This document shows, in pieces, positions 10,491 to 57,600 of a DNA stretch of 64,000 bases. Within the stretch, counting starts at the first letter, position 1. Each line of letters begins with the position of its first letter. The DNA comes from Epiperipatus broadwayi (Eukaryota; Animalia; Onychophora), in assembly GCA_028023455.1 (NCBI GenBank), contig JAQFVV010000006.1:18724001-18788000 (forward strand). The letters are read 5' to 3'. A program made the translations under genes and the position numbers. The notes below the pieces were generated by a model that saw only the letters and a list, made by a program, of their open reading frames with translations, was not told the origin of the DNA and did not search any database.

Positions 10491-10722
10491 AGTTAGTAAT
10501 TGAACCATATGCAAACACAATTGGCAATTCTCTTAAATGATTTATTACAATTCTTTAAATTTGTTTTAAAAAAAAATCAAATTATTTAAACAAATTTTGT
10601 ATGTGTAACTATGTTATAATTATTTATATTCAATATTGGAGATATTAGTATTAAAACTCATATTCTTTTTTTTTTTTTTTTTTGTACAATCAATACTTAT
10701 AATAATTAGTAAAGTACATATA

Positions 10723-16764: not shown

Positions 16765-18490
16765 TTGCATATCATTATTATTTTCATCCAATATCCACTG
16801 CAGGATGAAAATCTCTCCAAGTTTAATCCAGTTTTTCCAGTCTCTAGCCCCTCTTCTTCACATAATTTTAGCACACTTTCTTATTTCATCCATTCATTTC
16901 ACATAATAGTCTCTTTTTAGGTATTTTACAATATCTTAGAATCCACTTTAAGATTTCAACTGTCCACAACTATATTTCTTGAAGCAGTATAGCCTGCTCA
17001 TTTTCAACTCCAGTCTCTTAATTCTTTCAATTTATGTCAGTAATACCCATTTGTTCTCTCATCCATGTTTTCAATCCCTGCTTGATACTCCTAACGTATA
17101 TCTCTTCTACTTAACCACTAAACACTACATGATCACCATTCTTTATGATTACACAAGCTGTTTATACAAAGGCAAAACTCTCCATACATTAGTGCCACTC
17201 AGTGCAAGCTAGAGTAATTTATGAGGAGCCTTGTATCTGAGAGCACTGCACTTAGATCTTAGGGTCTAATGCAACCCTTCAGCAGCCACCTTTTACCTTA
17301 TTAACTAACTATAAAGCTTTGAGAACAAAATGAAAACACAATAATCTGAACACAGTTCAGCATCCATACTTTTTTTATTACTCTGGCTTGTACTACTATA
17401 TGGACAGATTTGCATCTGTGTAAACAACTTGTGTGAGCATAAAGATTGATGATTATGTGATGTTTAGTGGTTTAATAGCAATCCCACCCTAGAGGATTAT
17501 GCTGTCTGTGGTTATTAAAGAACCAAAGACACTAAAAGATATGGTTGCTGAATTGAGTTCAGATCTATATGATTATACAAACTAATGAGCTTGAATTGAA
17601 AACATTATGGTTTTCATTTTATTGTCAAGCCCTTTATAGTTTGCTAATAAGATAAAAGGTGGCTGCTGAGGGTTGCATTAAATCCTAAAATCTAGATGCA
17701 CTGCTTTGAGATCCAAGCCTTTTCACTGATGAAAATCACAAGCTAGAATCAGCTCTGGGTGATATTGGATGAGTAGGCACTAGATAGAGATTTTATGCAC
17801 AAACCTTCCTACATCCATTGATTTTCTCTGGCTCGCACTGAATGGTGCTTTACTGTATGGAGAGGTCTGTGTCTGTGTATCCTACCTCATTGAGTTGTCT
17901 GAAGTTTATATTACTCTTCTATTAAGTGTCCAAATCTCAGAACCATAAGTATGAACTGGTAAAACCCATTTAGCCTTTTCAAACACATAAGCACATTTCC
18001 TTTGAATATTATTTCTACCAAAAAACTCTATCCAAGTTTAATTTTATAATTACATTAATCCATTATGTTTCTATCTGTTTTATAAATCTGACCAAGATAT
18101 TTATAGTCATTAACTTTTTCTAATTCATCATTATTACTTTTTATTTCCTTCTTTTCAGAAAATCTATTGAACATTACTTTAGACTTTTTAAACATTAATT
18201 CTTATTAAGCGCATGGTCAGCAAATAATACATATACAGCTTTAACCTTACTATTATGTGCCTTGAGCAATCAAGGCGCATAGTAGTAAGGTTAAAGCCTT
18301 ATATGTATTTAGTCTTTTTAGTATTTATTTTTAGTCTTACTTTTTACTTTCTTCTGATAACTCTTGCAACATTTCCGGAAGCTGTGAAGAATTATTTGCC
18401 AAAACAATTACATTTTCTGCAAAATTTAGATGATTTAAATAATCTCCAATTACTTTTATTCCCTTAGCTTTCCATTTTAATCTACAAAGT
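16765..18490 (-). mobile_element. 5'-truncated RTE LINE, interrupted by hammerhead repeat copy C
   Basis: KGIKVIGDYLNHLNFAENVIVLANNSSQLPEMLQEL (RT domain, ORF 18337-18528). 3' end WKNWIKLGEIFILQW plus a tga/taa tail near 16770. Confidence 0.8.
17108..17875. mobile_element. Hammerhead-containing repeat, copy C (antisense part with ribozyme deleted, then ~1.1 sense monomer)
   Basis: Homology to copy A throughout; degenerate motif ctgatgaaaatcacaagctagaatcagctctggg at ~17725-17760. Confidence 0.75.
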
Positions 18491-22515: not shown

Positions 22516-22810
22516 AAACCATTAAACATCACGTGATCACCATTTCTTATGCAAGCACATAACTGTTATTAAAACAGGCAAAACTCCATACAGTAGTGCC
22601 ACTTAGTGCCAGCCAGAGTAATCAATGGATGCCAGAAGGCTGCTCTCAGATCCAAGGCTCCTCACTGACAAAGGCCAAAAGTCAGAAACTAGTCTGGAGA
22701 TATTGGATGAGTATGCACTAGATGGGGATTTTATGCATAACCTTCTGGCATCCATTGATTACTCTGGCTGGCACTGAGTGGCACTACTGTATGGAGTTTT
22801 GCTTGTTTTG
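22516..22810. mobile_element. Hammerhead-containing repeat, copy D (antisense then sense)
   Basis: Perfect 11-bp TSD atagatggatt (22505-22515 / 22811-22821). Ribozyme at 22658-22700 with core CTGACAA (G8 lost). Confidence 0.88.
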
Positions 22811-23120
22811 ATAGATGGATTGTGTGCTGATTATGGTGCTATAATTTTAAAGTTATAGATGGCACTCATAATGAATTCAAATTATCATCACATTACGCTT
22901 AGATTGATCTATAGAAAGATGATATAAGAAGAAATTGGGGATATAACCAGTTTTCATTTCAGTTGAAAATCTTTCTTTTTTTTTTTACTTAAACACTCTA
23001 TGCTAGCCCCACAACCTGTATCATGATAGTAAATAGATATGGGTATTTTAAATATATTTTTTTAGATTAATAACATTGTTTTTTTATTGTAATATATTTT
23101 GTATATTGTGGGGTTGAAAA

Positions 23121-26260: not shown

Positions 26261-26940
26261 TGAATACAATAGCTTTACAAATTGATTAATCAAGCTTACA
26301 GTAGATGGCTCTGGAGCAAAGGCAAATGCTCTTGAAAGCATATAGATAAAAAGTTTTATTGTTTGTAGCATATGATTATTATTTGGATTTAATTTGCTTT
26401 TAGAAGTGGAGAAAATAATGAAACAATGTCACATATTTAATATATTGTTTTACTAAAAATAATTGTCTAACCATAATTTACTTTATACAATTATCTAGTA
26501 TCAGTCATTCTGTCCTGAGTTACTATATAGTAGCATCTCAATACTTATCATACAATTCTGATCAATTTTTTTTAAATTCCCTTGTGTGATCATAAAGACA
26601 AGAATCTCTGCCACCCATTTAAAAGACATTCTTACTTCAATTACTAAAATTATATATGTTGGCACCATTCTCATTAATCTTAAAATCATCTAAATGAATC
26701 CAAATTATGAAAGTTTTGGATGAGCATGCTTCATCTTCATTATTAAAATAATGTGAATTATATGAAGTGAATTGAAACTCATCACCAGAAGTCAAAATGT
26801 TTTGAAGATAAAAAAGTTCTAGACTAGGATTTTTGAGTAATAGAATAGTGTACAGTTATCCGCTAGGTGGAGCTGTACTTAGTAATGATTCAAAAAATAA
26901 CTAATCCTTAAATAATAGAGATAAAAAAATTTTTTTATAC

Positions 26941-27176
26941 TAAATGCTTTTGTTGACTGCACTCTAAAATGAAATAAAATAATTGTTTCTTCAACTACAA
27001 TTGGAGTTTTTAGATTTAATTTGAAATTAAAAGCATGAGGGGGGGGGGAGAATTGAGTTAATTAATTTCTGGATCACCCCCATGCTTTTATTTCAAGTTA
27101 AATCTAAAAACTCCAATTGTGGTTGAAGAAACAATTATTTTATTTCATTTTAGAGCATACTCTATAAAAGCATTTA
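26941..27176. mobile_element. Foldback MITE (~90-bp arms, TA-flanked, possibly Tc1/mariner-type)
   Basis: ctctaaaatgaaataaaataattgtttcttcaac...agcatg is near-perfectly mirrored by catgct...gttgaagaaacaattattttatttcattttagag; outer ends taaatgctttt / aaaagcattta. Confidence 0.8.
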
Positions 27177-29847
27177 TTATATATAAAAAAATTATCTCGA
27201 TTATTTTTAAGTTTTGAATATTGGCACATTTATTGAAAATGTAAAATTATATTATATTTTAAATTGACTGTACACTTATAGTCGATATATATCAGTAGAT
27301 ATTTTTATTACAAGTTAAAATTATTATTATTACATAATAATACATATACATTAAGAGTTTAATGTTCTAATATTTTGCGATAATATTTCCACACTTAATT
27401 CTAAAGCTTCGACAATTCAATTTATTTCCTTACTGTAGCTAGTGCTTTCGAAGGAATGGGGCCTTCATTTTCAAAGCTATAGACAATTCTGATGCTAATT
27501 GTTTAATGTAAAAGATGGAAAAATAATGTAAATCAGGTTTGCCATTTCTTTGACATGGCGTAAAATGTATCTATTTTTGTTTATTGAGTTAGTGTCTGAA
27601 TTAATAAAGTAGGTCTCTGATTTTTCTTCTCACTTCATGTCGCTCCCTGCACACCACACAAGGGTTATCTGGGATGCATGGGTGGCCTCTTGTAGCTTTG
27701 TACTGTGTGAAAGTGGAAGTGTGGGCGGGGTCTGCAAGAGTTTTAAATAGTTTTTAAAATGTTGTTAAATTAAAAGAAAAAATGTTAAACTGCCCTCTTG
27801 TGATCATTATTTAAACCAAATGAACATTCTAAGGATAATTATTAACTGCAAAATGTGAAATTATTCCATATCTATCAAACTACTTATCATACTGAAAAGA
27901 TGTGTGTTTTAAATGGATTAAAGTGTTATAACTTAGTTATATATCAATTTTCAAGCAATTCTATTGAATTTAAATATATTAAACCTTGATTTTAAAATTT
28001 CATTCTAACTTGAAAAAGATCAAAAGTTAACAAATAAACAGATTTTCCAAAATCAATTAAAGCATTTAATTAAAATAAAATGTCTAACTGTATATTAATT
28101 AAAAACAAGAAAATAATATATTTAACAAGAAAAAAATATTTACCAAAAAAATATAAATTATTTAATGAAAAAATATATTGATAAATATAATTTATGCAGA
28201 AATGTAAATCCACAATAAATAAAATTGCAAAAATAAACCATCATTGGCAAATCTATCAAATAAAAAACAAATCCAAAATGCAATCCTTGGAGATGGGTAA
28301 TCCATAACAAATTAGATGCAAGCTAAAAATTAATTTGGTAATAGTGAAAAATGTATAGATCATAAAAATGCTCCCCAGAAGCCAAATCATACATTTTTTT
28401 AAATTGATGTCAGCGATAGGTTTCATACAACTTCATTATACTGCACCAACCATTTTTTTAAACCACTCTTTGATAAAATAATAACTTTCAGCAAGTATAT
28501 TTAATAAATATTATTCTCAATATTTTTACAATGTATCTGTTATCAGCCGTATTTTAGTACATTTGTAATTTTAGGAAGTGAAATTGTCACTTACATTTAA
28601 ATATTTTTTAGATGTGTATAAATAGAGATTTATTTTTTTTAGAAAAAAAAGATGTGTATATATATATACTGTTGTACTGGTCAGAATTGTATGTTCGTCT
28701 AACAAGAGCTAGCATCTAGGCAAAAGTACCTCGAATCCAATCATGTGCAAGATACAGAAGTCAGGAACAATCATGAATTCTGCCCTCTTGCTTATTTTCC
28801 AGATCTATAACATTACGAACAACATTTTTGATGATAACAAATGAAATTTTATTTATTCCTGTCCCGGAGCAACAGCAGAGAAACGAGATCTACAGGGGAT
28901 TACAAACTACTAGGCTTTGAATCCCAGCCCCCAACAGAATGAAATAGCTTAAGATTATAATTAGGCTTTTCATAAAATTCATCAATAAATCTAGAAATTG
29001 GCCTAAGGTCAGTGGAAATCACTATATATAATGTAATCCCATTAATGATGTGTATGCATAAATCATGAGGCAAAGCAGACTTAAGTAATAATTATATAGT
29101 TAATAATTTATTAATATTAATTATAAAAATGAATAAACAAATATTTAATTTAACAAACAGTTGTGAATCTATTTATATATGACACAACTAGAATTTATGG
29201 GTTTCACGTGATTATGAATGTTGATTTGCGTATTGAAGGAACTACATAATAATAGCACATAAGTTAATAATTAAATCTGCAATTAAATAAGATAATTAAA
29301 AAATGTATAGATAGTCAAAAGATGCGGCTTAATATGCTAACAGTGGATACCAATTTTACTATATTATGACTTGGATGCTATGATTATTTTTATGAAAAAT
29401 AAATGACCTTAAAAATAGATAAATAGGATATAAGTTACATCAATTTATTATGGTTCATTTGAACCGCATATGAAAATATTTTATAATTTACATTATTCAC
29501 TTCACAAGTCATTAGAACTTAAAATATTCACACAGAAAAGTTATTTATATTTTATTCTATTCTTTTCTGACTGGAAAAGATTTATTTAGCATTATTTGTT
29601 AGCGCACTCAACATTGTCTCAATGAGAGGGCGGGTAGCTTAAATAAGCTTTAAAATGACATTCACTATCTTATAATAATAAATGAAAATATGAGATGGAT
29701 TTAGAGCTCATGGCATTACGTCTTACAGATTTAAAATGGGCAAGTATAAAAATATTAAACAAGAATCGCAGTGCTGACTAAAATAATAATGCTAGAAAAG
29801 ATCGAATCCATTTTAGGACGAACGCTTCATCAATAATATAAGAACAT

Positions 29848-32900: not shown

Positions 32901-35217
32901 CCCCTACCATCCAAAGCATTTTTATTTGTTTTGAGGTAATATCTCAGGCACCAGCTAATCATAAGTTAAACAATCAGCATGCCTAGATGACAGGTATACA
33001 ATGTAGCACTTGATATATCCCAAGCTAGCTCAATTGTGGGAAAGGAAAAACTTTAATACATTTATAATTAACTGTAACTTAATTTATTCATGAAGCAGTT
33101 ATAAGAGAGAGAACCTATCAGGCAATAATTAAACAAACAAATAATTTATTCAGACATATTCATAGTTAAACATATTATAACACAATTCAAATAAAAGCCA
33201 CACATGTTTAAAATACAATATACCAACTTATGGAAGCAATATTAAAATTTATATATACTCATAATTAAAACACATTATAATGAGATATATTCATGCAAGA
33301 ATATGATAAAATTTTAAGGAAGCAACATTAAAGATTACTATTGCTGTAATACCAAAGTTCATTAGAGTCTTTTATTCAAATAAATGTTCAAATCTTTAGA
33401 TTGGGATAATAAAGAATTTATTTACTAGGATTTTTGCATATAACACATTGCATTTTTCATGGATACAATTCATTGCTTTCTCCTGCTTTGTTGATTACCA
33501 ACCAATTTGTCTTTCCTTTTGCATCGACGGTTTGGCTTCTTGCTGATTTTCCACATTTCAATGAAAGAGAGAGATTTTCCATAGTTTTCAGATCATGAGA
33601 TGAACATGACTTCTAGATAGAGAATATTTGATGTTATGAAGGACTGAGATTGAAGGCTAGTCGCATACTTCAGTTACTGTCTAGTCCTGCATACTGCTAA
33701 ACTGCTGGCTTTTCACCATTCTCTCTACTTTAAAAGTTTTTTGTAATACAGCAATGCTGAATGATAATGAAAATAATAATACAGTATAGTAATCGTGGAA
33801 TGAATCTCTCGGTCCTTTTATACACTTCTCCCTTATTGTTTTCTAGTTATCATTCTATGATCTGGTTTATTTAATTGATATTTCCTAATTAATTTTCCAT
33901 TATATTTTAATTAAATTCTTGCTTAGATTAATCTAATGTTTTAATAAGATACAGTCTTGAACCTTTTTCTTTGTCTCTTTAATTGATGCAACACTTTATT
34001 TTTGCAAGTTTGCATTTAAAACATTTTATATTTCGCTTTTATTAAGACTTAATTATTTCTTTTTAAATTTAATTTGATCATTTAATAATAAATGATTCCA
34101 CATGCAATACAGTGTATGTGTGTTCTCAAATCACACATTTGTTAGCAATACAATATATTTTTTAAATCTCCGTTTTCCATCATTTAAGTTTGAATTTATA
34201 AATAAATCTCTTTTTTTTTCTTTCTTATGGTTAATAATAAATCTCCCTTCACAAGGAGCTGCTTGTGTTTACTCTTTCCTGAACATGTATTAATTATACC
34301 TCAAAACTTCCATAGGAATATATTCTGATATCACTTATTTTATTATAGGCTATAACTCTCATTCATGAAAAACATTTTTCTCAGACTGCTTTATTCACAT
34401 GAATTCAAAGTGTTTGCTCTAATTAGGATTAGGATTTCTCTTTCAGATTATTGACCTATAATCATTCTAATAAAACATTGAATATATGGGTATCTAGTTA
34501 TTGTTAATTAGAAGGTAAACCCTCAGCATCCAACAATTCTATCTCATTCACTTCTCTTCTGTATGGAGTTGATGGGAAGCTGCTCTTATTTATGTAATTA
34601 AATAGTTAATATTATCCAATATTTATGGATTTAACATTATTTATTTCATGCTCAACACTTTCAATAGCTAAGTTCTAAGATAAAAATAATTTTACTTTGA
34701 TCATATAAAAAGAACTCTTATGCTCACCTTATATTGGACCTTAAACGTATTTGTGTTTTCCCAGAAACTAAATAATTATTTTCAACTATTTGTTTTTAAT
34801 CAAAAATCTGTTTCCATTACATATATAATAGTTTATTCATATCTAATCCATTTGATTTCAAGACTTCTCATAGATATCTGAATTCATTAATAAAAGCAAA
34901 CTCTATATAATATGTTCAACACACGTATAAACATACTAATGAGACGATGTAATTTTTAAAATGTGTGCTTTTAGATATCAAATAAAATAGAATAATTTGA
35001 TTATGAAAAGATAGTACAATAATAAATAGAGAGATCAAGATAGAGCAATCACATAATTGAGTGCCCAGGATTAAGGAAATGACTGTCTGAGAGATGGTGA
35101 AAGTGGGCGTGCATGGGAAATTTATAAATTTCTACCTTTTTTTTATTATTCTTTTAAAATTGTGGCTAACTAAAACTGCAGATTGTGAGTTTCTGAATAT
35201 TAGGGACTGATATATGT

Positions 35218-35508
35218 TATTAAAACAGGCAAAACTCTCCATACAGTAGTACCACCCTGTGCCAAACAGAGTAATCAATGGATACCAGAAGGCTAATGCG
35301 TAAAATCCCCATTTAGTGCCTGCTCATCCAGTAACCCCAGACTAGTTTCTGGCTTGTCGCCTTGGTCAGTGAGAAGCTTTGGATCTGAGAGCACTGGCTT
35401 CTGGCATCCATTAATTACTTTGGCTTGCACTGAGTGGCAGTACTGTATGGAGAGTTTTGCCTGTTTTGATAACAGTTATGAGGAAGCATAAGAAATGGGG
35501 ATCATGTT
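35218..35508. mobile_element. Hammerhead-containing repeat, copy E (same architecture as D, opposite orientation)
   Basis: 12-bp TSD actgatatatgt / actaatatatgt. Ribozyme on the minus strand at 35335-35376 with core CTGACCA. Confidence 0.85.
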
Positions 35509-40780: not shown

Positions 40781-41255
40781 AATTTTTCTAAAAACATATA
40801 TAAATTAAAACTATATGATGGAATTAGTCCAACATTTAATTATAAACACACTTAGGTTTAGACATATAATTTAAAAAAAGAAACATGGAAATAATATATC
40901 AATAAAGTCAGATATGATTACAAGAAATGCTGATGTTTGAAGGAAACCCAAATCAATACAATCCTGATTACATATACTGTTAATGAGATATTCCTAAAAA
41001 AAAAATAACATAACATAGTACCTACCATATTTTAAAACTTTCCAAGTATGTCATCTGGATGTGCAGCTTTGCTATTTAATAGAATTGTGATGTTGTTTTT
41101 CAGATCTATAAGTTACTTTCAATGTGACCAAAAAAAAAAAAAAAAGATCCAAAGCTTCCACTATTGCAGTTTTAATCCACCTTTAAATTTTTAAATTTTC
41201 TTATCAGTCATTAAACTTTTGCCTTTAAATCTCTCTATTGGTTATAACTCACATT

Positions 41256-44200
41256 CAGGTAGTTGTGAGTTTTGACCCATGTGGTCACCAGAGGCACTGG
41301 TCAGGGTCAACCACAGAAATACATAGAGTAAGGGCCCCAAATGCAGCATTACAAATTCCAGCCGAAAGGTAGTGCTGTTCACAATGCGTAAGCACAGGAA
41401 CATTCCACCAGCTGGCTGGCAGCAAAGCTGCCCGCTTGGTGGCACTGGTCACAGTGCGTAAGCCCATTTAGCTTACATCGTCTGCTACTAGCAGATACCA
41501 AGAACCTAGGTGGCGCTGATTGCCATAAACACATCTAGCTTATGTGTTGTCTGCTAACAGCGACTACCAAGATTCTAGCGCACTACATGGCGCTGTTTCT
41601 CCACAGTTACACATGGAAAAACTATGCACTGATAGAGTTTAGGTACCTACTACTTAAAATATGAATGGCGTATAATGTACAGGTGTGATTAATTAAGAAG
41701 CTACAACTATTTAAATATTCTTTCAAGCTTAATAGTATCATATGCTATTTCACAGTTTTATAAATGGATGTATTTTAAAAATTTTTTTTTTTTTAAAATC
41801 GATCTTTTTTTTTTTAATTATTTACTCTATGTCAAAATGTTATATATAAGTCAGGCGGTGAAATTTGCTATCATGGCCGCTTGAATGGCATCATAGATTT
41901 ACATACGAAAGTATGCTATAATTAGACAGGTTTGATAAAATTATCGCGTAGAAATCCTCATAATTATTCATAAAATATTTTATTAATCTATAAGTCAATT
42001 TTAAATTTAAAAATCAATCTTTTTTTTTTAATTATTTACTCTAAAAGTGTTTTTTTTTTTTAAAAGCTAATTTTTTCCCCCTTCTTTCAAAACTAGAGAC
42101 ATTCCAAAGATAAAATCTAATATATTTAATTAATAGGGGCTTTACTAATGAATAGCTATGGTCAATTAGTGAATTGGATTGATTTAATGAGACAGAAACT
42201 GATATATGATGAATTATATTTATTTAAAATTTCATATATGCTTGATATAATCCATTACTTAGCGTTGGATAATGCACGCAGGCATTTTATTTACTAAACA
42301 ACATTACTCTAGGCCATTTAGCAAAATAAATTTGTGGCTATTATTTAATTGCGCTAATTTTATGCTATATAATAAATCACTACATTCCACTTATTAGTTA
42401 TGCCCTTTCATCATCAGTTCGAGTGGCTATTATACATGTAATCAAACCAAGTCTGGAGTGAAGTTTAATAATACATCCAATTATGATAAATTTATATATT
42501 AAATATAGGCATATAAAGCCTTACAGATAGCTTTAGATCGAACAGGTTTTCAAGAATGCTTCATTTCAACGCGAGAGTTGGCTATAAAGATTTTACTAAT
42601 ATGCTACGCACAAGTAAAATATAATAGTAAAGTAGCTCTGCGGACGGATGAATAGATTTTAGGGTTTTCATGACCAACACCAGTTTACCCAATGACCGAT
42701 CGTCATGCTGCTAAAAGGGAACCTTCATTTGGTTCATAAGAGGCCAGGGACATACGTACTAATCTGGCCCTTAGCTCAGTCTTAGCTACTGCACTACCCA
42801 TACGAGAGGAAGATGAGCTGGACTTACCGTGGCTCCATCTTATATATATATAAAAACAGTACAACGATAAAATATTGATAAATTTCACATCCGCCAAGCC
42901 GAAGTATATTATAAATTAAATACCATACATTAAATGAACACTAGTTTTGTCAGCTTGATTAAAAGAGCCAACTCTTCTGTAGCATGAGAAATACATATAA
43001 ACTACTGACGGGAATATATATATATACACAAACTTTACTTTATCCTGCTCAATCTCTTATTTATGTATAATTAATAAACTTTTAAAGGGGGAAAGTATAT
43101 TTAAGGGACTTACGAATACTTTAATAAGAAAAATATACTTATGATTACACTCCAAGCTAGTTTAATCTTTAGTAACATAATAATTAAAGGTTGAAAGTTT
43201 GGATTTATAAGCCACATTTTATATTTACATTAATTATTTACTAAATGACAAAATAATAACGAGCACAAAGGGTCGCCATTATTTATAAATTAGGGGTTCG
43301 AAACGGAGTGCTAAATGACGCTATAATTAATACAATACGAAGATTTTAAATAATATCTTCAAAAAGTATATATTTCATAACTAAATGCACGCCGTTTCGG
43401 GACAGGCATAATTAATAATAACTAAAAGAAGCAAGAGAGAAATAAATATAACTGTAGTGATTAAGTTATATAGCAAAACAAGAAGTTAATAAAGGAAATT
43501 AACAAAAGTATGTCATTTATAGAATTGAAATATTATTGATAAGACAATTTAGAAAGAGTTTACAATATAGTTAGCTAACCTGATTTTGAAGCAATAATGA
43601 TTATTTTGAATTTTTCACAGAGCTCTGCGATTTTAATAATTTTAAAACAGATACTCGAGCTGGAATGAAGGTGGGTTCTTTGGCGGCTTATGGCATCTTC
43701 TCTTTAGTTGGGAGACGATTTAAGATGATATTCCTATAGCTGGAGTTGGGGTAGTTGAGTTTGAAGGAAGGTGAGTTCTTTTAACATCTTATGGCATCTT
43801 CTATTTATTATAAGCTTGTTAAGGCAACGTTAATTGTTGCTCCGGCCTTGGATGGATCAAATTCTGACGTTCCATCACGGCAAAGGCAACAAATTCTTGC
43901 CTGACTAGCAGGCCATAGATAAATTAACAAATTGTCAGCTTCTCATAGTAACAGCTTTTCAAAAGCAGATGGAGTATCTTTTCCGCTAGCTTATTTATAT
44001 ATTTCTACCAAGCCTTAACACCTTTTTGGAATTTCGTTTGCCTCAGGACCAATCGACTTTTAATTAAACAAAATCATATAATCTAATTTCTACTACTGAT
44101 AAAGTCTCCAAGGTGTTATTTTTAATTTACTTTAAAAAATTATTAAAATATATAAATTATATAATTTTGATTCCGATTTCATTAATTAAATTTCTTTTTA

Positions 44201-47200
44201 GGTGTTATAAAATGTTATGGCTTAGCAGATAGTAACGGTATTATGATTTAATGATAAAATCTTTTGTTGAAACAAATTCAATCAGTAAACTAGATTTTAC
44301 TTTTACCCCAGGTGCGGTCACTAATTGATTTCTTGTTTACACTAAATTCCCATTTTTAATTATAAACTGATGACTTTTATTTTAACTAGATATAAATAAC
44401 TTTTAACATATTTTCTTTATATTGTTTATTTTAAAAAAAGCAAATTTGACAGATCTTATAAAAAAATACTTTAGTTTCAGTTATATCTATTAAACATTAA
44501 ATCAGAAAACCGTAAATATATTATAAAGAAAACATTTTACATTATTTTTATTTAATCTTAAATATTATATGTACAAATCATTATGCCATAATTTCATGGT
44601 TTAAATTATCCATCCACATACGAATATAATACAAATATAAAATTTAGAATTGACTAACAAATCATTATGCCATAATTTCATGGTTTAAATTATCCATCCA
44701 CATACGAATATAATACAAATATAAAATTTAGAACTGACTATGTCAATTCTAAATTTTATATTTGTATTATATTCATATGTGGATGGATAATTTAAATTTT
44801 ATATTTGTATTATATTCGTATGTGGATGGATAATTTAAATCAGTGTTTCCCAACCTGTGGTACGCGTACCACTGGTGGTACGCGAGTTGCTGGTTGGTGG
44901 TACACGAAAAATAATCAATAATGATGGACATAAAAAAAAAATTAAATCATAAAAATATAGAAACGTTTTTTCCTATAATTCATAAAAATTATTTTAATTA
45001 ATAATATTATACTGTAAAGTTGTTAATATGTACAGTCGATAACGATCTTTAATGTTAATGATAAAATTGAAAGTATGATTAAGAAATTAGATTTTTGGAA
45101 ACAGTAATATATATAAGTATCGAAAACAATCAACTGGAAGTATCCGAAACTCTACATAATTTTTTTGTTTGAAAATAAGGTTAGTCTGTCTCAAGATATA
45201 CGAGAAAATATAATAACACACTTAACAGGATTAAAATTGTCTTTCATAGAATATTTTCCAAAATCCGAAAACACAAATGATAATTGGATTTCAAACCTCT
45301 TCTATGCAGAAAATTTAGAAAAAGCTACATCATTATCAATAAAGGATAAAGAAAATTTAATAGAATTATCATGTGACAAAACTTTACAAGTAGAATTCAA
45401 ATGACACAATCTAATTAATTTTTGGTTAAACATTAAAGAATATGAACAACTTTCTGAGAAAGATCTTAAATTATTACTACCGTTTACTAGTACGGAAATA
45501 GTAGGAAGAGGTTTTTCTTCATATATTTCTTTAAAAAATAAGTATCGAAACAGATTGAACGCAGCTGTAGGCTTAAGGGTATACCTCGCATCTTTTGAAT
45601 CAAATTTCAAAAAATTATGTTGTTCGAAACAAGCACAAAGATCTCATTAAATTTATTTTATAAAAATATTTGATTATGATAAGAAAATATACTAATTGTT
45701 TTTTTATAATTTTGTGTTTTTATTAAAACCATTTATTAGTAAACGAAATATGACAAAATAGTAGATAAATAATGAGTCGGATCAAGGCAAATCAATCTAA
45801 ATTATTTAATTTGAAAGAATGTATCAGAAAAGGGTCATACCCAGAAATTAGACTCTCATTAATTCTTGATCATCTATTGTGGATTACTAGATGTAAGTTA
45901 GTATTTAATCATCAAAATTTTAATCCTATTAACTTCATGCTGAACAATATAAAGAAAACAAGAACAAGAGATAGCCTGATAACCCCTGAGGTTATTTTTA
46001 CCATGACATGCTGGATTTACCCTCTCCATGGCCCAACCAATAGCAAGATGCTCCAAAAAAAGGGAAAACAGACTCAAATTCGGGAAAAACAAATGAAGGA
46101 ATGAGAAAACACTTTGAACAAAATATGTACCAAATAACCTTTAATGTAATAATGTAATTTTTAATAAATTATTTTGGAAAAAATATGAAACTTTGAACAA
46201 ACACATACATATAAATATGTTACAGTGAGTTTATAATTTCAGTGAGTTTATAATCTGGTATGACGTTTAGGCGTGTTTCAATGTAATTTGTCTCATTATG
46301 AGATGTGAATACATACATGGTCACCCTATAATATTTATAATGCAAATAAAATAACACACTCGCAATAACAAATTTCATGAAAATACAATCATTTTTACAA
46401 AGTGGTACAATTTAGCATAATGTAGTACCAAGTGGTACGCGAGCCAAAAAAGGTTGGGAAACGCTGATTGAAATCATGAAATTATGGCATAATGATTTGT
46501 ACATATAATATTTAAGATATTTTCTTTATAATATATTTACAGTTTTCTGATTTAATGTTTAATAGATATAACTGAAACTAAAGTATTTTTTTATAAGATC
46601 TGTCAAATTTGCATTTTTTAAAATAAACAATATAAAGAAAATATGTTAAAAGTTATTTATATCTAGTTAAAATAAAAGTCATCAGTTTATAATTAAAAAT
46701 GGGAATTTTTGTGTAAACAAGAAATCAATTAGTAAGTGCACCTGGGGTAAAAGTAAAATCTAGTTTACTGATTGAATTTGTTTCAACAAAAGATTTTATC
46801 ATTAAATCATAATACCGTTACTATCTGCTAAGCCGTAACATTTTATAACACCTAAAAAGAAATTTAATTAATGAAATTGGAATCAAAATTATATAATTTA
46901 TATATTTTAATAATTTTTTTAAGTAAATTAAAAATAACACCTTGGAGACTTTATCAGTAGTAGAAATTAGCTTATATGATTTTGTTAATTAAAAGTCGAT
47001 TGGTCCTGAGGCAAACAAAATTCCAAAAAGGTGTTAAGGCTTGGTGGAAATATATAAATAGGCTAGCGGAAAAGATACTCCATCTTGCTTTTGAAGAGCT
47101 GTTACTACGAGAAGCTGAAAATTTGTTAATTTATCTATGGCCTGCTAGTCAGGCAAGAATTTGTTGCCGTTGCCGTGATGAAACGTCGGAATTTGATCCA

Positions 47201-49830
47201 TCCAAGGCCAGAGCAACAACCAACATTACCTTAACAAGCTTATAATAAATAGAAGATGCCATAAGACGTAAAAGAACTCGCCTTCTTTCAAATTCAACTA
47301 CCCCAACTCCAGCTATAGGAATATCATCTTAAATCGTCTCCCAACTAAAGAGAAGATGCCATAAGCCACCAAAGAACTCACCTTCATTGCAGCTCAAGTA
47401 TCTGTTTTAAAATTATTAAAATCGCAGAGCTCTGTGTAAAATTCAAAATAATTATTATTGCTTCAAAATCAGGTTAGCTAACTATATTGTAAACTCTTTC
47501 TAAATTGTCTTATCAATAATATTTCAATTCTATAAATGACATACTTTTGTTAATTTCCTTTATTAATTTCTTGTTTTGCTATATAACTTAATCACTGCAG
47601 TTATATTTATTTCTCTCTTGCTTATTTTAGTTATTACTAATTATGCCTGTCTCAAAACAGCGCGCATTTAGTTACAAAATATATACTTTTTGAAGACATT
47701 ATTTAAAATCTTCGTATTGTATTAATTATAGCGTCATTTAGCACTCCGTTTCGAACCTCTAATTTATAAATAATGGCAACTCTTTGTGCTTGTTATTATT
47801 TTGTCATTTAGTAAATAATTAATGTAAATATAAAATGTGGCTTATAAATCCAAACTTTCAACCTTTAATTATTATGTTACTAAAGATTAAACTAGCCTGG
47901 AGTGTAATCATAAGTATATTTTTCTTCTTAAAGTATTTGTAAGTCCCTTAAATATACTTTCCCTTTTTGAAAGTTTATTAATTATACATAACTAAGAGAT
48001 TGAGAGGGATAAAGTAAAGTTTGTGTATGTCAGTAGTTTATATGTATTTCTCATGCTACAGAAGAGTTGGCTCTTTTAATCAAGCTGACAAAACTAGTGT
48101 TCATTTAATGTATGGTATTTAATTTATGATATACTTCGGCTTGGCGGATGTGAAATTTATCAATATTTTATTGTTGTGCTGTTTATATATATATATAAGA
48201 TGGAGCCACAGTAAGTCCAGCTCATCTTCCTCTCTTATGGGTAGTGCAGTAGCTAAGACTGAGCTAAGGGCCAGATTAGTACGTAAGTCCCTGGCCTCTT
48301 ATGAACCAAATAAAGGTTCCCTTTTAGCAGTATGACGATCGGTCATTGGGTAAACCGGTGTTGGTCATGAAAACCCTAAAATCTATTCATCCATCCGCAG
48401 AGCCACTTTATTATTATATTTTACTTGTGCGTAGCATATTAGTAAAATCTTTATAGCCAACTCCCGCATTGAACCGAAGCATTCTTGAAAACCTGTTCAA
48501 TCCAAAGCTATCTGTGAGGCTTTATATGCCCATATTTAATATGTAAATTTATCGTAATCGGATGTATTATTAAACTTCACTCCAGACTTGTTTTGATTAC
48601 ATGTATAATAGCCACTCGAACTGATGATGAAACTAATAAGTGAAATGTAGTGATTTATTATATAGCATAAAATTAGCGCAATTAAATAATAGCCACAAAT
48701 TTATTTTGCTAAATGGCATAGAGTAATGTTGTTTAGTAAATAAAATGCCTGCGTGCATTATCCAATGCTAAGTAATGGGTTATATCAAGTATATATGAAA
48801 TTGTCAATAAATATAATTCATCATATATCAGTTTCTGTTTCATTAAATCAATCCAATTCACTAATTGACCATAGCTATTTATTAGTAAAGCCCCTATTAA
48901 TTAAATATATTAGGATTTTATCTTTGGAATGTCTCCAGTTTTGAAAGAAGGGGTGGAAAATTAGCTTTTTTTTTTTTTAAAAAAAAAAAACCGATTGTCG
49001 TAAAAATTACATTTTTTTTTAATTTAAAGAAAAACCACTTTTAGAGTAAATAATTAAAAAAAAAAAAGATTGATTTTTTAATTTAGAATTGACTTGTAGA
49101 TTAATAAAATATTTTATGAATAATTATGAGGATTTCTACGCGATAATTTTATCAAACCTGTGTAATTATAGCGTACTTTCGTATGTAAATCTATGATGCC
49201 ATTCAAGCGGCCATGATAGCAAATTTCACCACTCGACTTATATATAACATTTTGACATAGAGTAAATAATTAAAAAAAAAAAGATCGATTTTTAAAATAA
49301 AAAAAATTTAAAAATACATCCATTTATAAAACTGTGAAATAGCATGTGAGACTATTAAGTTTGAAAGAATATTTAAATAATTGTAGCTTCTTAATTAATC
49401 ACACCTGTACATTATACGCCTTTCATATTTTAAGTAGTTTGTACATAAACTCTATCAGTGCGTAGTTTTTCCATGTGTAACTGTGGAGAAACAGCGTCAT
49501 GTAGTGGGCTAGAATCTTGGTAGTCGCTGTTAGCAGATGACACATAAGCTAGATGTGTTTATGGCAATCAGCACACCTAGGTTCTTGGTATCTGCTAGTA
49601 GCATATGATGTAAGCTAAATGGGCTTACACACTGTGACCAGTGCCACCAAGCGGGCAGCTTTGCTGCCAGCCAGCTGGTGGCATGTTTCTGTGCTTACAC
49701 ATTGTGAACAGCATCACCTTTCAGCTGGAATTTGCAATGCTGCATTTGGGGCCCCCACTCTAACTATTTCTGTGGTTGACCCCAACCAGCGCCTCTGGTG
49801 GCCACATGGGTCAAAACTCCCAACTACCTC
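41256..49830. mobile_element. Giant foldback/palindromic element (~3.5 kb inverted arms), probably derived from a DNA transposon
   Basis: 41257 aggtagttgtgagttttgacccatgtgg... is the reverse complement of 49829 ...ccacatgggtcaaaactcccaactacct. Mirror homology continues to the apex tgac-tat-gtca at 44735-44745. About 17 differences in the terminal ~215 nt, counted by eye. Confidence 0.92.
44841..46466 (+). mobile_element. Non-autonomous hAT (Buster/Charlie-like) transposon with transposase C-terminal remnant
   Basis: TIRs cagtgtttcccaacct / aggttgggaaacgctg; 8-bp TSD atttaaat / attgaaat (nnnTAnnn Buster preference). Translation LIELSCDKTLQVEFK..INFWLNIKEY..LLPFTST..GFSSYISLKNKYRNRLN..KQAQRSH* (hAT dimerisation domain). 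Confidence 0.92.
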
Positions 49831-52800
49831 AATTTATTTCACTTAAGCTCCCCCACCCACTGCTTTCAGTTTTAAACATCACATGACCTCTGTTATATTT
49901 GGCTGAATTGCAGGTTTCAGACTTAAACCAATAGTAATATGAAAAAATTATAAATGCTCACTATTTAATATCCATAATTTATTAGAACAAATATAATTAG
50001 TACATACAGTGTGACATATAACTTTGTCATTAATGGGCTGGTCATGCTGAATGACTGGATTCACTTCCAGCTGTATATTTAGCTTACCTCATGAACTCTA
50101 GTCTAAACTCTTCCATCTGTACTGGATAGCTTGCCTTGAGTTTGTTGAATGACTCTCTCAGCTGTAATATACAGCCTGCCTCGAGTCTGCCTATGTCATA
50201 GCAATTTCCAATCTTATCAGGACTTGCCTCACTGTGTATATGTATCGGTAATGAATATAGTAGAAAACACTTTCACTGTTGGAAGTGGTTTCCATGGAGA
50301 GCACATTCAGTCATTCAGATAGACGTTCTCTGCCTTGCCTCCAAAAAGGCTATTTATTGCCAGATCCCTTCCTTTAATGGCAGCAGTCAGATTCAGAAAG
50401 CCTAACCAATGATAGGATTTTATACACATGTTTACTCATTGGCCATACTTGTTTTTATCCTTTGGCCATTTTTATGCATTGGTTGTCCGCATGTTTACAC
50501 ATTGGTTAGTAGCAACAAGTCCGATCAGGTAAGGAATCTGGTCTAATCACTTCTGAAGGCAAGGTCAGATTTGACAACCTCCAAAAGTTGTCTTTTGATA
50601 TATGTTTATTTATCAGATTAATATAGCCAGAATAAAAATTGGGTAAAATTTGATAAAAGACATTAAATTTGAATAAAAGATTTTTATCAGGTATGCAACC
50701 TGTTACCTACTTATTTAATTCTTCAAAACTGCCGGAAGTGTTGCCAGTAAGAAAGAATGAGATCTTTAAATTATATTAGGCAGATGATAAAGAAATGCTA
50801 AAAGAGAGTTACCAAGCAAGTCTGAAAGAGAATGAGAAAGTATAAATGGCCAGCAATATAAGAAGTTATGTTATTATTGGAAGGACAGTAAGTTGAAGAA
50901 TAGAGAAAGTCAAGTATTTCAGTGTTAAAGATTTTAAAAGTATAGAAATGGGAATGTTGTGATAGTTTGAGAAACCACAAAAGAAATATAAGATCTTTTT
51001 TTTTTTTTTTTATCAAAAGATCTTTATTGACTTCGTTTAAAATTTGAATTCACATTTTTACATCTTATGTTTTACAAAGTTTAATCAATGAATTTACTAA
51101 GTGTATATGGATACATCTATGGTAATCGTGAGATTGAAACCATAGTGGGCTTCATCATCCCCGGTTTAATTGTTTGAATTTACATTCTTAGTTCATATTT
51201 TATGATGCAGTGATAGCACATCTTGTCACTATGCCTATGATCTGTGTTTATATTCAGGCTAGTTCAAATTTTTTCAGGTTCCAATTAGGTTTGGTATTTT
51301 TTGTTTCCAGGGAATTCTAGACAGCCACCCAACATCAGACAGTCAATAGATATATTACTGTTCTTAGTTAGAAGACAAAACAAGAATGGAAAAGCATTCA
51401 AATTTGGCGAATGTTGCCTTCGTTGTTTCATGTTGGGAAAGTTTTTGCCCTGCATTAAGCAGTTTAAAAGCTGTCTATCTTTTTTAAATATATATATATG
51501 AGAGGAGAATATAAATTTTGTTCTTAAATTTTATAAGATCACCAATAAGACCACAACAAACAAAATTACTTTTATTAAATAAATATAATGATAATAGGTA
51601 GTACTTTGCTAAATTATTTGCATATAGCATCTAAACTTAATTCAAATTATAATCGTTTATATCCCAAAGTAAAATAACTTTTGAGCATGAAGTCTCAAAA
51701 ATTGATTTAAAATTAAACTGACTTGAAAGTATATTTATATTTGAGCGATTGTTTTTTTTTTTAATGAAAACTTAAAATCTGGTTTAGTAAAATAATCATA
51801 TGGTTAGTCTATTCGTATGAGCCTTGCATTACCCAAGTGACTGATAGAGCACAATTTTAAAAAAAAGAAACTCATTAGAAGGCCATGTAACGTTCATGCA
51901 TTAAGAATGCCAAACCGGGAATCCTTTAACCAATTTTTTTAAAAAAAAAAAAAAAAAGAAACTTTTCTCAGAAGGGATTCGTTTCAACAATCTTTAGCTA
52001 AATCCCTGTTCAACCATTGTATTGACCTGTAACGGTTAGTAATACAGTTGAAGCACCGACTATTACCAAAAACTTAACGTAAGTACGATTCTTAAATTCT
52101 TAACTGAAACTTTAAATTTGCAATTCGATTACTATGAATATATAGTTTCTGCTGGGAGATGTTATTATTCCAACTTTAATTTATTGTTAACATTCTTTTA
52201 TTTCGACAAAGTTCTATCGAAAAACTATTTCCAAGCCCCGCGCGTGCATTTTTTTTTTTTTTTAAAAAAAAAAAAAAGGAATATAAATTCTAAATTACGT
52301 ATTATCTTATTTTTTATTCATTTCTCTTTTTCTCTCTCTTTCAAAATGTTTAAATATTTCAGTCTAAATATTTTCACGTCCTTTTGAAGCACCTTTCATT
52401 GACTGATATTTTTACAAGACTACATTTGTCTCAAATAATGTTGACCCCATTTATAATTCCTTTGAATGTTTCATTACAGTTTAGAATACAACAAAAATAT
52501 TCACTTTGATTTATTTTTGGTGCCTATTATAATTTATCCAATTAAAAATTGGAACGCTAACAGAAAAATTGTTCCCATAAGTTGAGATACTCCAAGAAAT
52601 TAATACTTTACTTGAAATAAACTTGTAAGTTGCTATGACAACAAAGTAATTCAGTTTTGCAAATATTCTTGGATTAATATATTGACTATTGCTATATATT
52701 TATCCACTCTGTGTTTGATTAAATAAAATGGTGAAAAAATTAATTTAAGTATTCCAACTCCGTACAATTATATTATTAAAATTTTATATTTAAACTCTGA

Positions 52801-53176
52801 ATAAGTATTATTTTACATTAATTAAAAGATAATGATTTTTAAAATTTTATTATAAAAATTAAATGTTATTCAATCTATAACCTGTTTTATTGCATGGCTG
52901 ATTAATTAAAATCTCGAAATACTTAATTGTTTATAATTGGATTTTTTTATATATAATAAACTAATGATTAAATAATTGTAATCTAAATTTGTTCTTATAA
53001 GAAATCCTCTTTATGGACTGAAAGCATGGTTAATGATTTTCTAGAAATTGTCTTATTGTGGTCATACTAAATAGTGACAAAATCTCTATAGTCGTACCTC
53101 CTAGTGTAAGCCATAGTAATCAATGGATGCAAGGTTTGTGCATAAAATCCCTATCTAGTGCCTATTCATCCAATAT

Positions 53177-53218
53177 TCCCAGACTAGTTTCTAGTTTGTG
53201 GCTTTCATCAGTGAAGAG
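53177..53218 (-). ncRNA. Minimal hammerhead ribozyme, intact core
   Basis: ctcttca-CTGATGA-aAGCcacaaACTa-GAAA-CtaG-TC|tgggaa; stem II has one mismatch. Confidence 0.6.
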
Positions 53219-53544
53219 CTTTGGATCTGAGAGCACTGCACCTACATCTTAGAATTTAATATAACCTTCCAGCAGCCACCTTTTACTTTTTTTGGTTAAT
53301 TATAAAGTTATAAATCCACCTTTTGGTATCTTTGGTTCTTTAATAACAATAGTCACCATCATCCCATTAGCAGCAATGGCATTATATGACTAAACACCAC
53401 GTGATCTTCATTTTCTATGCAGACACAGGCTATCAAAATAGTGATAAGCTATGTATAGCATCACCTACTGATGCAAGCCCCAGTAATCATTGGATGCAAG
53501 AAGGTGGATGCATAAATTTCCTGTCTAGTGCTTACTTATCCATT

Positions 53545-53586
53545 ATCCTGACTAGTTTCTAGCTGGTGGCTTTCATCAGTGAGGAG
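53545..53586 (-). ncRNA. Minimal hammerhead ribozyme, intact core with compensatory stem II
   Basis: ctcctca-CTGATGA-aAGCcaccaGCTa-GAAA-CtaG-TC|aggat; helix I is weakened by a small deletion. Confidence 0.55.
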
Positions 53587-54001
53587 TCTTGAATCTGAAA
53601 GCATTGCCCTAAATTTTTAGAATTTAATACAGTCCTCCAACAGCCACCTTTTACTTTTTTGGTTAACTATAGAACTATGTGTCCAAAATTAAAACCCAGT
53701 TCCAGTATCAGTATATTTTGGTGACTTTAGTCCTTTAATAACCATAGTTGCAGGACTAGTATTAAATCACTAAACATCATATAATCACCATTTCCCATTC
53801 TTAACAAGCTGTTAAAGCAGAACAAACTCTCCATACAATAGCTCCACCTAGTGCAAGGCATAGTAATGGATGAAAGGAAGAAGATTTATCTGGGAATATT
53901 AGATAAATAGGCACTAGATACGGATTTTATGTACAAACCTTTTTGCCTCTATTGACTACTATGGTTTGCACTAGATGGCACTACTGTATGAGAGTTTGTC
54001 A

Positions 54002-54645
54002 AAGAATTTTTATCGGTATACTTGTATAAAAGGTGGGATGATTGTGTTAGGAGGATTGTTGAGTGTTATAGTGGTAAGGAATGGGATAAAAGAATAGAAG
54101 TATTAATAAAAAATAGGGAGTTGGAGAGATGGAGAAGTAGTATGGAGGGTAAAAAGAGTTTAAATATATATAGAAGTAAACGGAATATTGGAAGCGAGTT
54201 AATTTATGATAATAGTAAGGAAAGTAGTTTATTGTTTAAGGCTCGAACGGGATCTTTAGCAACAAGAGAATATACATGTAAATGGAAAACTATGGGTGAT
54301 TTAGCGTGCAAATTGTGTAAGGAAGGTATAAAAAATATTAGGCATCTGTTGATTGAATGTAAATGCTTTGTACAGATAATGAAGTTATGGGAGAATAGGT
54401 ATGAACAAAGTGACAATACAGAAAGTGAGTTAGTAGTTTTTATGCTGGGTTTGCGAAAAGATAAGGGGGATTTTGATTTAAAGGCCATAGAGTTGACAAA
54501 GATTATGTTGTGGAAATGGGATGGGGCAGAATATGGGAAGACTTAGAATGGGGAATGGAAAATAAAGTGGCTAACAGGTTTATCTGGGCATAGTTGCTGA
54601 GATATTCTTGACTTCGTTTAAGGAGAAGCCAAATACATCACATCA
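54002..54645 (+). mobile_element. 5'-truncated non-LTR retrotransposon 3' end (C-terminal CCHC zinc domain), relatively young
   Basis: Uninterrupted 174-aa ORF 54022-54546 with DNSKESSLLFKARTGSL...CKLCKEGIKNIRHLLIEC; short 3' UTR ending in a (catca)n tail. Confidence 0.85.
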
Positions 54646-57600
54646 CTATTTCAACAGCTTGGTAAGCATAGGAAATGGTGATCATATGGTGTTTAGTGGT
54701 TTAATACCATTCCTGTTCATGGTATGATGGTGACTATGGTTATTAGAGAAACAAAAACACCAAAATGTATAGATACTGAATTTTTTTTTATATCTGGAAG
54801 ACTATACAAGTGAATGAGTTTGGATTGAAAATATTATTGTGTTTCATTTTGGACTCAGATTTATAGTTAACCAAAAAAGTAAAAGGTAGTTGCTGGAGAA
54901 TTGCATTAGATCATAAGGTCTAAAATGCAGTGTTTCAGGTCCAAGGTGCCTCTCTGATGAAAGTCACAAGCTAGTCTGGAAATATTGGATTGACACTAGA
55001 TAGGGATTTTTCTTGCATCCATTGATTACTATGACTTGCACTACGTGGCACTATTTTATAGTGAGTTTGTCACTGTTTTAACAGTTTGTGTAAGCATAGG
55101 AAATGGCAATCATATGATGTTTAGTGGTTTTCCTACCAAAACTTTTTTATCAGAATTTTAATAGTGGCCTATTCAAAAATTACTCTTGGATTAATTTTTG
55201 ACTAAGACAAATAAACAAAAAATGATATGTTTTGTCTTTTGAAAAAAATTATTGCAGTTATTATGATACTCGAACAGGCATTTGACATCCTTAGTAACAA
55301 TCATGTAATTATTATTATTGAAAGTAGAAAGGGGGTAAGAAATTACTCGTTCATGATGACTTTCTGAATAACAGATAATACAATTATTATTTTTATTGCA
55401 GTCATTAATTGTTGCTTTGGCTTACACATTAAAATACACTCAATTTTACTAAAGATGAGCTAAAGCAGAAGGTATTATTGATTATAAAGGGAAAATAATG
55501 TAAGAAATTTCTAGATTTTATCTTCTCTCTCTCTCTCTCTCTTTTTTTTTTTTTTTGAAACTATAAATGAAGATACTAAATAAATTATTTAAAATGTTCT
55601 TCAATTTACTCACTTTGTAAGCACACAATCAATCAAATATTAATATTGACCAGTGAATGAGTGTCAAGATAATTATTAATCAGAGGAAAATTCCCAGACT
55701 AATTTGAATTGGTTAGGTGGGTGTCAATGCACTCATGACTGAAGTTAAAATAAAGTTCCCAATATGGTGCAATTTCCACTACTTACTAGCTATTGAATGC
55801 ACTGTTTATCTTTAAATTTTATTTATGGATGTGTTTAAATATGTTTTTCTTTTACATATCGATGCTATAGTTATTGTGAACTTTGTTTTTATCCCTACTT
55901 TTATTTGAATACATGGGTTCACATCTGCTATCCAATGATTGTTTTTCATATTATGCTGAAATGTGTAATGAAATTCATTCTATATTCTCTAGAAATCTTT
56001 ATAAAGAAATTTTGTACTTTTGTTTTTTATCTTTTTATTTTGCTTTACTTATTATATCATGTGATTTCACTGATCACTCTAAAGTTTACAATAGATAATT
56101 TTAGAATAGGAAGAAAAGGCTGCTCTTGGAAAGAATGAATAAGCATATAAGAAAGGCATATAACATTGTTATTGGTATTTATATTGTTTTTGTTTGTATT
56201 TTATTATAATTTACACTTACTTCTGTATCAAGTGATATTAATAGAGGATGATTCATCAAACATGGATTGTAAATAGATTTATAAAATTAATTTTTTTTTT
56301 TGAAAGGTAAAAATAAAAAATGAATCAAATACTTATCAAAAATGTCTTAAAACTGATCAATTTGTAGTTATCTAAATCAGATTCAGTTACTGTGTATGTA
56401 GGTATGTATATTTCATTAGTCATTGAAAGTAAATTATTTTCCAGGATAAAAAGTAAATCTTCAAACTTTGATATTTACATTAGTGTCTTTATCTAATTGG
56501 ATTTTGTTAATTACATATCAGAATTTTTTTCACATTGTGAAATGAAAAGTAATTCTATTGTCAGTTGCTGAGGAATTGCATGATGGTTGAGAACTAAAAT
56601 GGTTAGCCACAATAGTACTTTTCAACTAACCCAATTGGAATGATTGTTTTGAGGGTCTCTTTCTATAATTGTTAGCTCTTTAGTTTGTCATTTTTTCCAA
56701 TATGCTAATTCATGCTGGATGTATTATAGATTAAGCTATTCAAATGATTAGTATTTTATCTGAATTCATACTTTTTATTGAAATTTCATCATGATAGTTA
56801 TTAAAACCAATCCTTAATCCTCTCTACGTAATTCACTTTAAATATTCAAATTAATAGATTTCCAGTTATAATGAAGTGCATAATAACTCAAGTTTTGTTA
56901 GGATAGAAAATCTATTATTGAATTGCAAGTATACAGTACTTTTCAAGACACAAACACATATATAATGCTTTTTTATATGTATAAGGAAAATTGTAAATAA
57001 TAATAATAATATAGTTATTAATAATGAATCGAGGGAACAAATTTATATGTTTTATGCAGTGTGGCTTCAATCATGCATTTGCTGAAGCAATAAGAAAAAA
57101 AAACTAACTATTGCATTTTTATTTTTAAAATAAAGTCAATAGTGAAATATCTTTCATCACCCTGGGTCATTGACTTTTTTCTCACATAAAAACATAGATT
57201 AGTCTCTGTATCAAGAAATTATGATTTCTTTCATTACTTTAATGTTTTTAAACCAGTGTTAACTTTAAGTATGTTCTAAATTTTTGTATAATTTTAATGA
57301 TTACTGTTAAAACATATCTTATTATGCACATGAAATTCAGAAAAGATAATAAAGGAAGAATAAAATATCTGCACTTTTAACTTAAGAAATGTTATTACTA
57401 TGTCTAATCATATATAGCACCCCAAGATGAAAATGTCTAATGGCATCTAGTAAGATTGATTTACAATTATTATTTTTTGAATGGGTTATGTATGGCACTC
57501 AGAGACAGCAAAATAGCTGCTGAATATTGTAAAGTTTATCCATTTTAATGCATATTTTGTTTGTTTATTTATACATTTTTATTTGGATATAATAGAAGTG

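Follow-up and report, generated by a model that had tools for sequence, protein, structure and literature searches.

Here we report that a 64,000-nucleotide stretch of the genome of the onychophoran Epiperipatus broadwayi (contig JAQFVV010000006.1; hereafter the window, whose own coordinates are used throughout) contains an 8.6-kb palindrome that is real, old and non-coding and is not a working transposon. Its two arms meet almost without a spacer and have diverged from one another, and one of them was later interrupted by a transposon of the hAT type. We favour, with confidence that stands at about even, an origin by a single fold-back inverted duplication of resident DNA, followed by editing at the centre of the palindrome.

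Structure of the palindrome

The two arms run head to head across an apex of 3 nt, as the original prediction had it, which reads TAT. Of 60 mirrored positions, 54 pair when the centre is put at 44740.0 and at most 29 at each neighbouring centre, which places the axis of symmetry on nucleotide 44740. The palindrome had also been located correctly, with limits at 41256 and 49830; the true outer limits lie 3 nt further out on each side, at 41253 and 49833. The left arm measures 3,486 bp, while the right arm is in two pieces, separated by the 1,626-bp hAT. The locus has the following parts (coordinates, strand, description).

41253-44738, no strand: left arm, non-coding (inverted match; coding signal not found)
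44739-44741, no strand: apex, TAT, 3 nt, with the axis at nt 44740 (54/60 pairing)
44742-44840, no strand: inner 99 bp of the right arm, from the apex to the hAT (inverted-repeat pairs, axis pairing)
44841-46466, + strand: internally deleted hAT, right arm only (terminal inverted repeats, 8-bp target copies, putative dimerisation remnant)
46467-49833, no strand: outer 3,367 bp of the right arm, beginning with the second 8-bp target copy of the hAT (inverted match)
44573-44740, + strand: 84-bp tandem repeat, 2.0 copies with 1 mismatch (44573-44656 and 44657-44740)
44745-44840, + strand: 43-bp tandem repeat in the right arm, 2.2 copies, with TTTA microhomology at the junction (repeat finder, axis analysis)
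41368-41600, no strand: degenerate tandem subrepeats of ~70 bp in the GC-rich outer end, mirrored at ~49486-49718 in the right arm
41791-42043, + strand: two direct repeats of 38-39 bp, 92% identical, around a 176-bp segment (BLAST)

When compared with the window by BLAST, the left arm gave a single inverted match of 3,413 columns (41253-44606 against 49833-46467, E = 0) with 92.7% identity, gaps counted, and a repeat finder returned the arms as a chain of blocks that are 95-97% complementary. A global alignment of the arms with the hAT removed (3,399 aligned sites) yielded a divergence of p = 0.044 (Kimura two-parameter distance, K2P = 0.046), made up of 150 mismatches (107 transitions and 43 transversions) and accompanied by 14 indel events. 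The inverted repeat is thus confirmed as real and far beyond chance, and the identity of its arms, put at roughly 90% when judged by eye, is about 95% when measured (4.4% of aligned sites differ). The proposal that neither a spacer nor a transposase separates the arms also stands: only the 3-nt apex lies between them, and we found no transposase or other open reading frame (ORF) between or inside the arms. The accompanying idea that the palindrome is a duplication of one end of something is unsupported, as nothing marks the arm as a transposon end.

Divergence and age of the arms

Sites in CpG context differ between the arms in 28% of cases (43/153, with 40 of the differences being transitions) and other sites in 3.3%, an 8.5-fold excess. 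We read this excess as the signature of methyl-cytosine deamination which, on the evidence of the sequence, implies long independent evolution in the germline rather than sequencing error. Divergence is roughly uniform along the arms, being lower in the very AT-rich 500 bp beside the apex and higher at the GC-rich outer ends, which are the most diverged part. In the palindromes of primate sex chromosomes, gene conversion keeps the arms nearly identical. Here there is no sign of gene conversion from arm to arm, and the arms have decayed independently and neutrally, without homogenising conversion.

As an observation in its own right, the CpG decay between the arms (41253-49833) would imply that cytosines are methylated in the germline at an apparently intergenic, repeat-rich locus.

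A one-sided hAT insertion

The insertion, which lies at 44841-46466, is indeed confined to the right arm, as predicted, and has the termini and target copies of a hAT element. Its 15-bp terminal inverted repeats begin CAGTG and CAGCG, in line with the CAG or TAG start of hAT repeats, and agree at all but one position (14 of 15). Target copies of 8 bp stand on either side of it (ATTTAAAT at 44833-44840 and ATTGAAAT at 46467-46474); in the left arm the corresponding site, without an insert, is ATTTAAAC. Target duplications of hAT elements follow the pattern nTnnnnAn, and both copies fit it. An 81-aa open stretch within the element (45405-45647) resembles the hAT C-terminal dimerisation domains of ZBED5-like proteins, with an Atlas score of 0.97 and 213 of 256 features common to the ZBED5/Dimer_Tnp_hAT (PF05699) clusters; a Pfam hmmscan of it gave no match at E <= 1. 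The element has its own intact target duplication and occupies one arm only, and it therefore entered after the palindrome had formed. On the same grounds we rejected the resident hAT as the maker of the palindrome.

The hAT also contains an ORF of 111 aa (45769-46101, + strand), one of three in the window of at least 110 aa. It matches nothing in Pfam, and its Atlas leads, zf-RVT clusters (0.71) among them, are weak; it may represent a fragment of a long interspersed nuclear element (LINE) captured within the deleted hAT.

Content of the arms

The arms show no detectable coding signal, and the palindrome encodes nothing detectable. The longest open stretch is 70 aa in the left arm and 93 aa in the right, and the open frames of the arms are no longer than those of a control region under the standard, mitochondrial and other tested genetic codes. 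The idea of a mitochondrial insert was rejected on this last count, frames under the mitochondrial and alternative codes being no longer than in the control. A single frame is open in both arms; it has accumulated about 9 amino-acid changes per 70 residues between them and is therefore not under selection.

Database searches point the same way. Among 20 open stretches taken from the arms, the flanks and elsewhere, the sole Pfam match was a LINE zf-RVT domain far outside the palindrome, and neither the Pfam search nor the open-frame survey found a reverse transcriptase or GIY-YIG remnant in the arms. The 93-aa stretch of the right arm drew 0 phmmer matches among 1.84 billion representatives and low Atlas recognition, a word-indexed search found no relative of the 75-aa outer ORF, and nine ORFs of the arms, hAT and flanks had no exact record among 15 billion proteins.

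Searches for structured RNA gave a similar picture. No Rfam family reached its gathering score anywhere in the window, and at E <= 5 the only matches in the region were microRNA-like and correspond to the apex hairpin itself. No tRNAs were found in the window, and no hammerhead was found in the arms, either by Rfam to E = 5 or by a separate motif scan for the core. The outer 364 bp fold as RNA with a modest z of -2.2 or -3.4, which is not diagnostic.

Most of each arm (~3.1 kb) is complex, AT-rich and non-repetitive, and the outer ~350 bp are GC-rich and carry the degenerate ~70-bp subrepeats. The 38-39-bp repeats have counterparts in the right arm at 49042-49077 and 49258-49303, and since this repeat-flanked 176-bp structure is present in both arms it is older than the duplication. 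A nested segment of this kind, common to both arms, is as expected of ordinary resident mosaic DNA.

Asymmetry at the centre

Of tandem repeats of 40 bp or more the arms contain just two, both no more than 170 bp from the axis. The second copy of the 84-bp repeat terminates exactly on the axis nucleotide, 44740. For a random position in a 3.5-kb arm, the chance that a repeat boundary falls within 1 nt of the axis is, as a rough figure, about 1 in 1,000, and we therefore take this repeat to be linked to the axis. At the junction of its copies (between 44656 and 44657) the adjacent bases differ, so that the phase of the repeat is unambiguous and the junction has no microhomology. The 43-bp repeat of the right arm is equivalent to that arm being 41 bp shorter than the left arm near the centre. 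The 84-bp repeat and the 41-bp difference look like scars of central breakage or stalling.

At about 100 bp from the axis, the hAT makes the two sides unequal by a further 1.6 kb. What is left is a symmetric core of ~55 bp, with a further stem of ~50 bp beyond an asymmetric loop; the central hairpin folds as DNA at -109 kcal/mol (z = -22). These features bear on the original prediction that the persistence of so long a palindrome is surprising. The arms have indeed diverged enough to show age, and the surprise itself is weakened by a centre that is asymmetric beyond ~55 bp, owing to the tandem repeats of 84 and 43 bp, the 41-bp difference in length and the hAT of 1.6 kb. Asymmetry at the centre is known to make palindromes more stable (PMC10766186), and survival is therefore less surprising than was first supposed.

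Outer boundaries, flanks and copy number

No significant target-site duplication was found at the outer ends of the palindrome, where the abutting 9-mers match at 6 of 9 positions. The best match between the flanks (11 of 12 bases) is set back from the ends, by 78 bp on the left and 31 bp on the right, and 91 of 500 shuffles scored at least as high. The flanks also differ in composition. The left flank has ~26% G+C (window average 28%), and only 2-5% of 300-bp windows elsewhere in the stretch are as GC-rich as a block in the right flank; this unlikeness mildly disfavours clean insertion into one site. Tests for similarity between the GC-rich outer end of the arm and the right flank, as would be seen if the one continued into the other, were negative, and a 100-bp AT-rich gap separates the end of the right arm from the GC-rich block, so that the argument from composition for the right arm as the original is weak.

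The block itself (50000-50600) is 600 bp long with ~40% G+C, begins 170 bp beyond the right end of the palindrome, and has no long ORF and no Pfam match.

Self-BLAST at E 1e-8 and 1e-2 revealed no further copy of the arm or of the flanks in the 64-kb window, and a conserved 28-base terminal pattern was found 0 times in a metagenome scan. Seven DNA runs from one sample (X1-X4 and X9-X11) held 0.41-0.60 of the sampled words; for words of the left arm the share was 0.58-0.60, and run X3 held 0.58 of the left arm and 0.41 of the right boundary block. In a rough and unverified model of word shares, ~22% of words are common to both arms and even very small runs contain ~20% of the arm. Under this model the shares would roughly fit a two-copy sequence and not a young multi-copy family.

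The runs X5-X8, which are very small (75-115 million letters) and carry two organism names, each contained 15-23% of left-arm words (41253-44740) but only 3-5% of those from the right boundary block. They may be reduced-representation libraries; otherwise, some part of the arm is a repeat present at high copy number in both species.

Origin of the palindrome

Between a one-off fold-back duplication, an aberrant transposition and a foldback family, the origins among which the original prediction left the choice open, the one-off duplication is favoured because no significant target duplication and no coding or hammerhead content were found, and the arms are complex and mostly non-repetitive. 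One old event would have copied ~3.5 kb of non-coding resident DNA onto itself in reverse, either by snap-back of a 3' end or by a strand switch at a replication fork, at what is now nucleotide 44740. The resulting palindrome, almost without a spacer, would have had two new junctions, at the axis and at one outer boundary, and its centre was probably later broken or stalled again.

Two histories could account for the central repeat. After formation of the palindrome, a cruciform or hairpin at the centre may have been resolved into hairpin-capped ends; a nick in one cap, at 84 nt from the tip, would have allowed it to unfold, and filling-in and joining of the ends without homology would have followed. 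This would predict the order unit, unit, axis, inverted unit, and would amount to a long P-nucleotide-like addition within the centre-break scheme for long palindromes, which is summarised in PMC3300023 (its reference 26) and which we infer to apply to this locus. Alternatively, during the founding event itself, the fork may have stalled, slipped back 84 nt, met the same barrier and then switched strands, with the right arm afterwards losing 41 bp by slippage. All variable sites among the repeat copies (1-2 of them informative) are private to one copy, and the two histories are therefore not separated. The slippage change of 41 or 43 bp, together with the hAT ~100 bp from the axis, would have cut the symmetric core to ~55 bp, and this smaller core would explain the survival of the palindrome.

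Two observations weigh against a fold-back duplication with later central editing. An imperfect direct repeat abuts both ends of the palindrome (TTATAACTCAC at the left end and TTATTTCAC at the right) and may be what remains of a target duplication, and the ~70-bp subrepeats in the outer 350 bp are a trait of some transposon ends.

The palindrome might instead be a snap-back retro-insertion in the style of Penelope-like elements, an origin that we regard as unlikely and yet as a serious competitor. A reverse transcriptase primed at a target nick would have made a copy of the last (3') 3.5 kb of a long non-coding RNA and folded back on its own complementary DNA, leaving the 3' ends outward. Such elements are known to leave adjacent inverted 5'-truncated copies, to have tails of 30-40 bp and bodies of 3.4-4.4 kb, and to retrotranspose host genes in trans (PMC8557442). 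The 3-nt apex would suit snap-back priming, palindromic repeats with hammerhead-like cores occur elsewhere in the window, and the head-to-head geometry is that of an adjacent inverted 5'-truncated copy, although this geometry is not specific to Penelope-like elements. However, the arms contain no hammerhead, no reverse transcriptase or GIY-YIG remnant and no long open frame; they are ~10 times longer than the hammerhead palindromes of the window; no target duplication is significant even when tails are allowed for; and the flanks are unlike, the left being AT-rich and the right having its ~40% G+C block 170 bp away. The specific version in which Penelope-like machinery acting in trans made a snap-back retro-copy of a 3.5-kb host non-coding transcript is doubtful.

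We consider it improbable that the palindrome is a copy of a foldback-type DNA transposon, an element that would consist of long terminal inverted repeats alone and depend on a transposase supplied in trans from another locus. Two long inverted arms without an internal segment are what such an element would leave, and the ~70-bp subrepeats in the outermost 350 bp would fit it as well. The outer ends of the palindrome read (C/G)AGGTAG, which we take to resemble hAT-like termini and count in favour of this origin. Yet no 8- or 9-bp target duplication was found (the abutting 9-mers, as noted, agree at 6/9), ~3.1 kb of each arm is complex, AT-rich and non-repetitive with older nested repeats, and the outer ends are the most diverged part of the arms, not the most conserved. 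Nor is there a second copy in the 64 kb, and the word shares do not suggest many near-identical copies.

Complex inverted structures do trouble assemblies (PMC8557442), but an artefact, whether a fold-back chimeric read or two haplotypes or dispersed copies misjoined head to head, is very improbable: the halves of a chimeric read would be identical, as the original prediction rightly argued from arm divergence and the one-sided hAT, whereas these arms are set apart by 150 CpG-biased substitutions and 14 indels, by tandem repeats near the axis (within 170 bp) that are not the same in the two arms, and by a hAT flanked by target copies of its own; misjoining of haplotypes by fold-back would have left a right flank mirroring the left one and is excluded since self-comparison of the window shows that the flanks are not mutual mirrors over at least 14 kb; and the 64-kb window is without any N.

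Comparison with known systems

The locus resembles fold-back inversions and interstitial inverted duplications attributed to fork stalling and template switching or microhomology-mediated break-induced replication (FoSTeS/MMBIR) and to origin-dependent inverted-repeat amplification (ODIRA), in having two adjacent inverted copies of resident DNA with an almost spacerless junction, in lacking a target duplication, and in the subsequent erosion at the centre of the palindrome (PMC10766186). Under ODIRA, however, the expected product is an inverted triplication, whose two palindromic junctions form at short inverted repeats separated by 40-80 bp (PMC10766186). The present locus has one junction, two copies and a 3-nt apex, and any founding microhomology would be readable only from the ancestral sequence.

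In the mouse transgene palindromes of Cunningham et al. (2003), rearrangements were reportedly confined to the centre and joined without homology, leaving the palindrome more asymmetric and more stable, and the outcomes are said to have been mainly central deletions. Centre-break revision of this kind is consistent with our locus in that the changes are confined to the centre, are joined without homology and make the palindrome more asymmetric. The difference is that a direct repeat of 84 bp, with its end on the axis, forms the main scar here; this repeat may be viewed as a long P-nucleotide-like tract.

Penelope-like insertions with an adjacent inverted 5'-truncated copy (PMC8557442) share with the locus a head-to-head arrangement, a tiny apex, and an arm length within the size range of the elements; unlike them, the locus has no reverse transcriptase, GIY-YIG domain, hammerhead or pseudo-long terminal repeat (pseudo-LTR), and neither a target duplication nor a tail that is significant. 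FB-type foldback transposons, known from Drosophila and other animals, likewise have long inverted arms, do not require an internal region, and carry subrepeats near their ends, but FB arms consist almost wholly of tandem subrepeats and are accompanied by a 9-bp target duplication, while the arms here are mostly unique complex sequence with no clean duplication. Human palindromic AT-rich repeats (PATRRs) have a comparable AT-rich, nearly perfect central hairpin of ~55-100 bp, but are only a few hundred bp long. Finally, as at hairpin-RNA loci that give rise to endogenous small interfering RNAs (endo-siRNAs), an inverted repeat of this length is predicted to yield double-stranded RNA if transcribed.

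Significance

Taken alone, the palindrome is a single structural variant of an already known type with no evident function. Palindromes that are long and nearly spacerless rank with the most fragile DNA structures known from bacteria, yeast and mouse, and a natural one whose arms have diverged by 4.4% is a useful record of how a germline tolerates such a structure. What can be read at the locus is the independent decay of the arms, an 84-bp repeat ending on the axis, a 41-bp asymmetry and a hAT ~100 bp from the axis, and we suggest that its main value is as a record of centre-directed repair in a long-lived natural palindrome. Should relatives carry the single-copy state, the founding junctions would be directly readable, and fold-back at the level of DNA could be separated from snap-back by a reverse transcriptase. 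If the palindrome were after all a retro-copy, the mechanism that makes the small hammerhead palindromes would also make giant hairpin loci from cellular RNAs, and could be a source of new hairpin-RNA genes.

Other repeats in the window

A family of repeats with 70-89% identity, often arranged as head-to-head palindromes of 250-700 bp, occurs at 10719-11411, 14327-14488, 17107-17864, 22516-22813, 35207-35507 and 53069-55130. Hammerhead-like cores are present in this family, for example CTGATGA..GAAA at 53556-53579 (- strand) and 14329-14352 (+ strand), and score below the Rfam gathering score for hammerheads. A separate small palindrome of ~300 bp at 26910-27206 has arms that are ~82-88% complementary around a 54-nt centre, and does not match the hammerhead repeats in the self-comparison of the window. 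Lying among the hammerhead repeats, a 184-aa open stretch at 53992-54543 (+ strand) matches zf-RVT at E = 1.3e-5, just under the Pfam cut-off, and is a remnant of the 3' end of a LINE.

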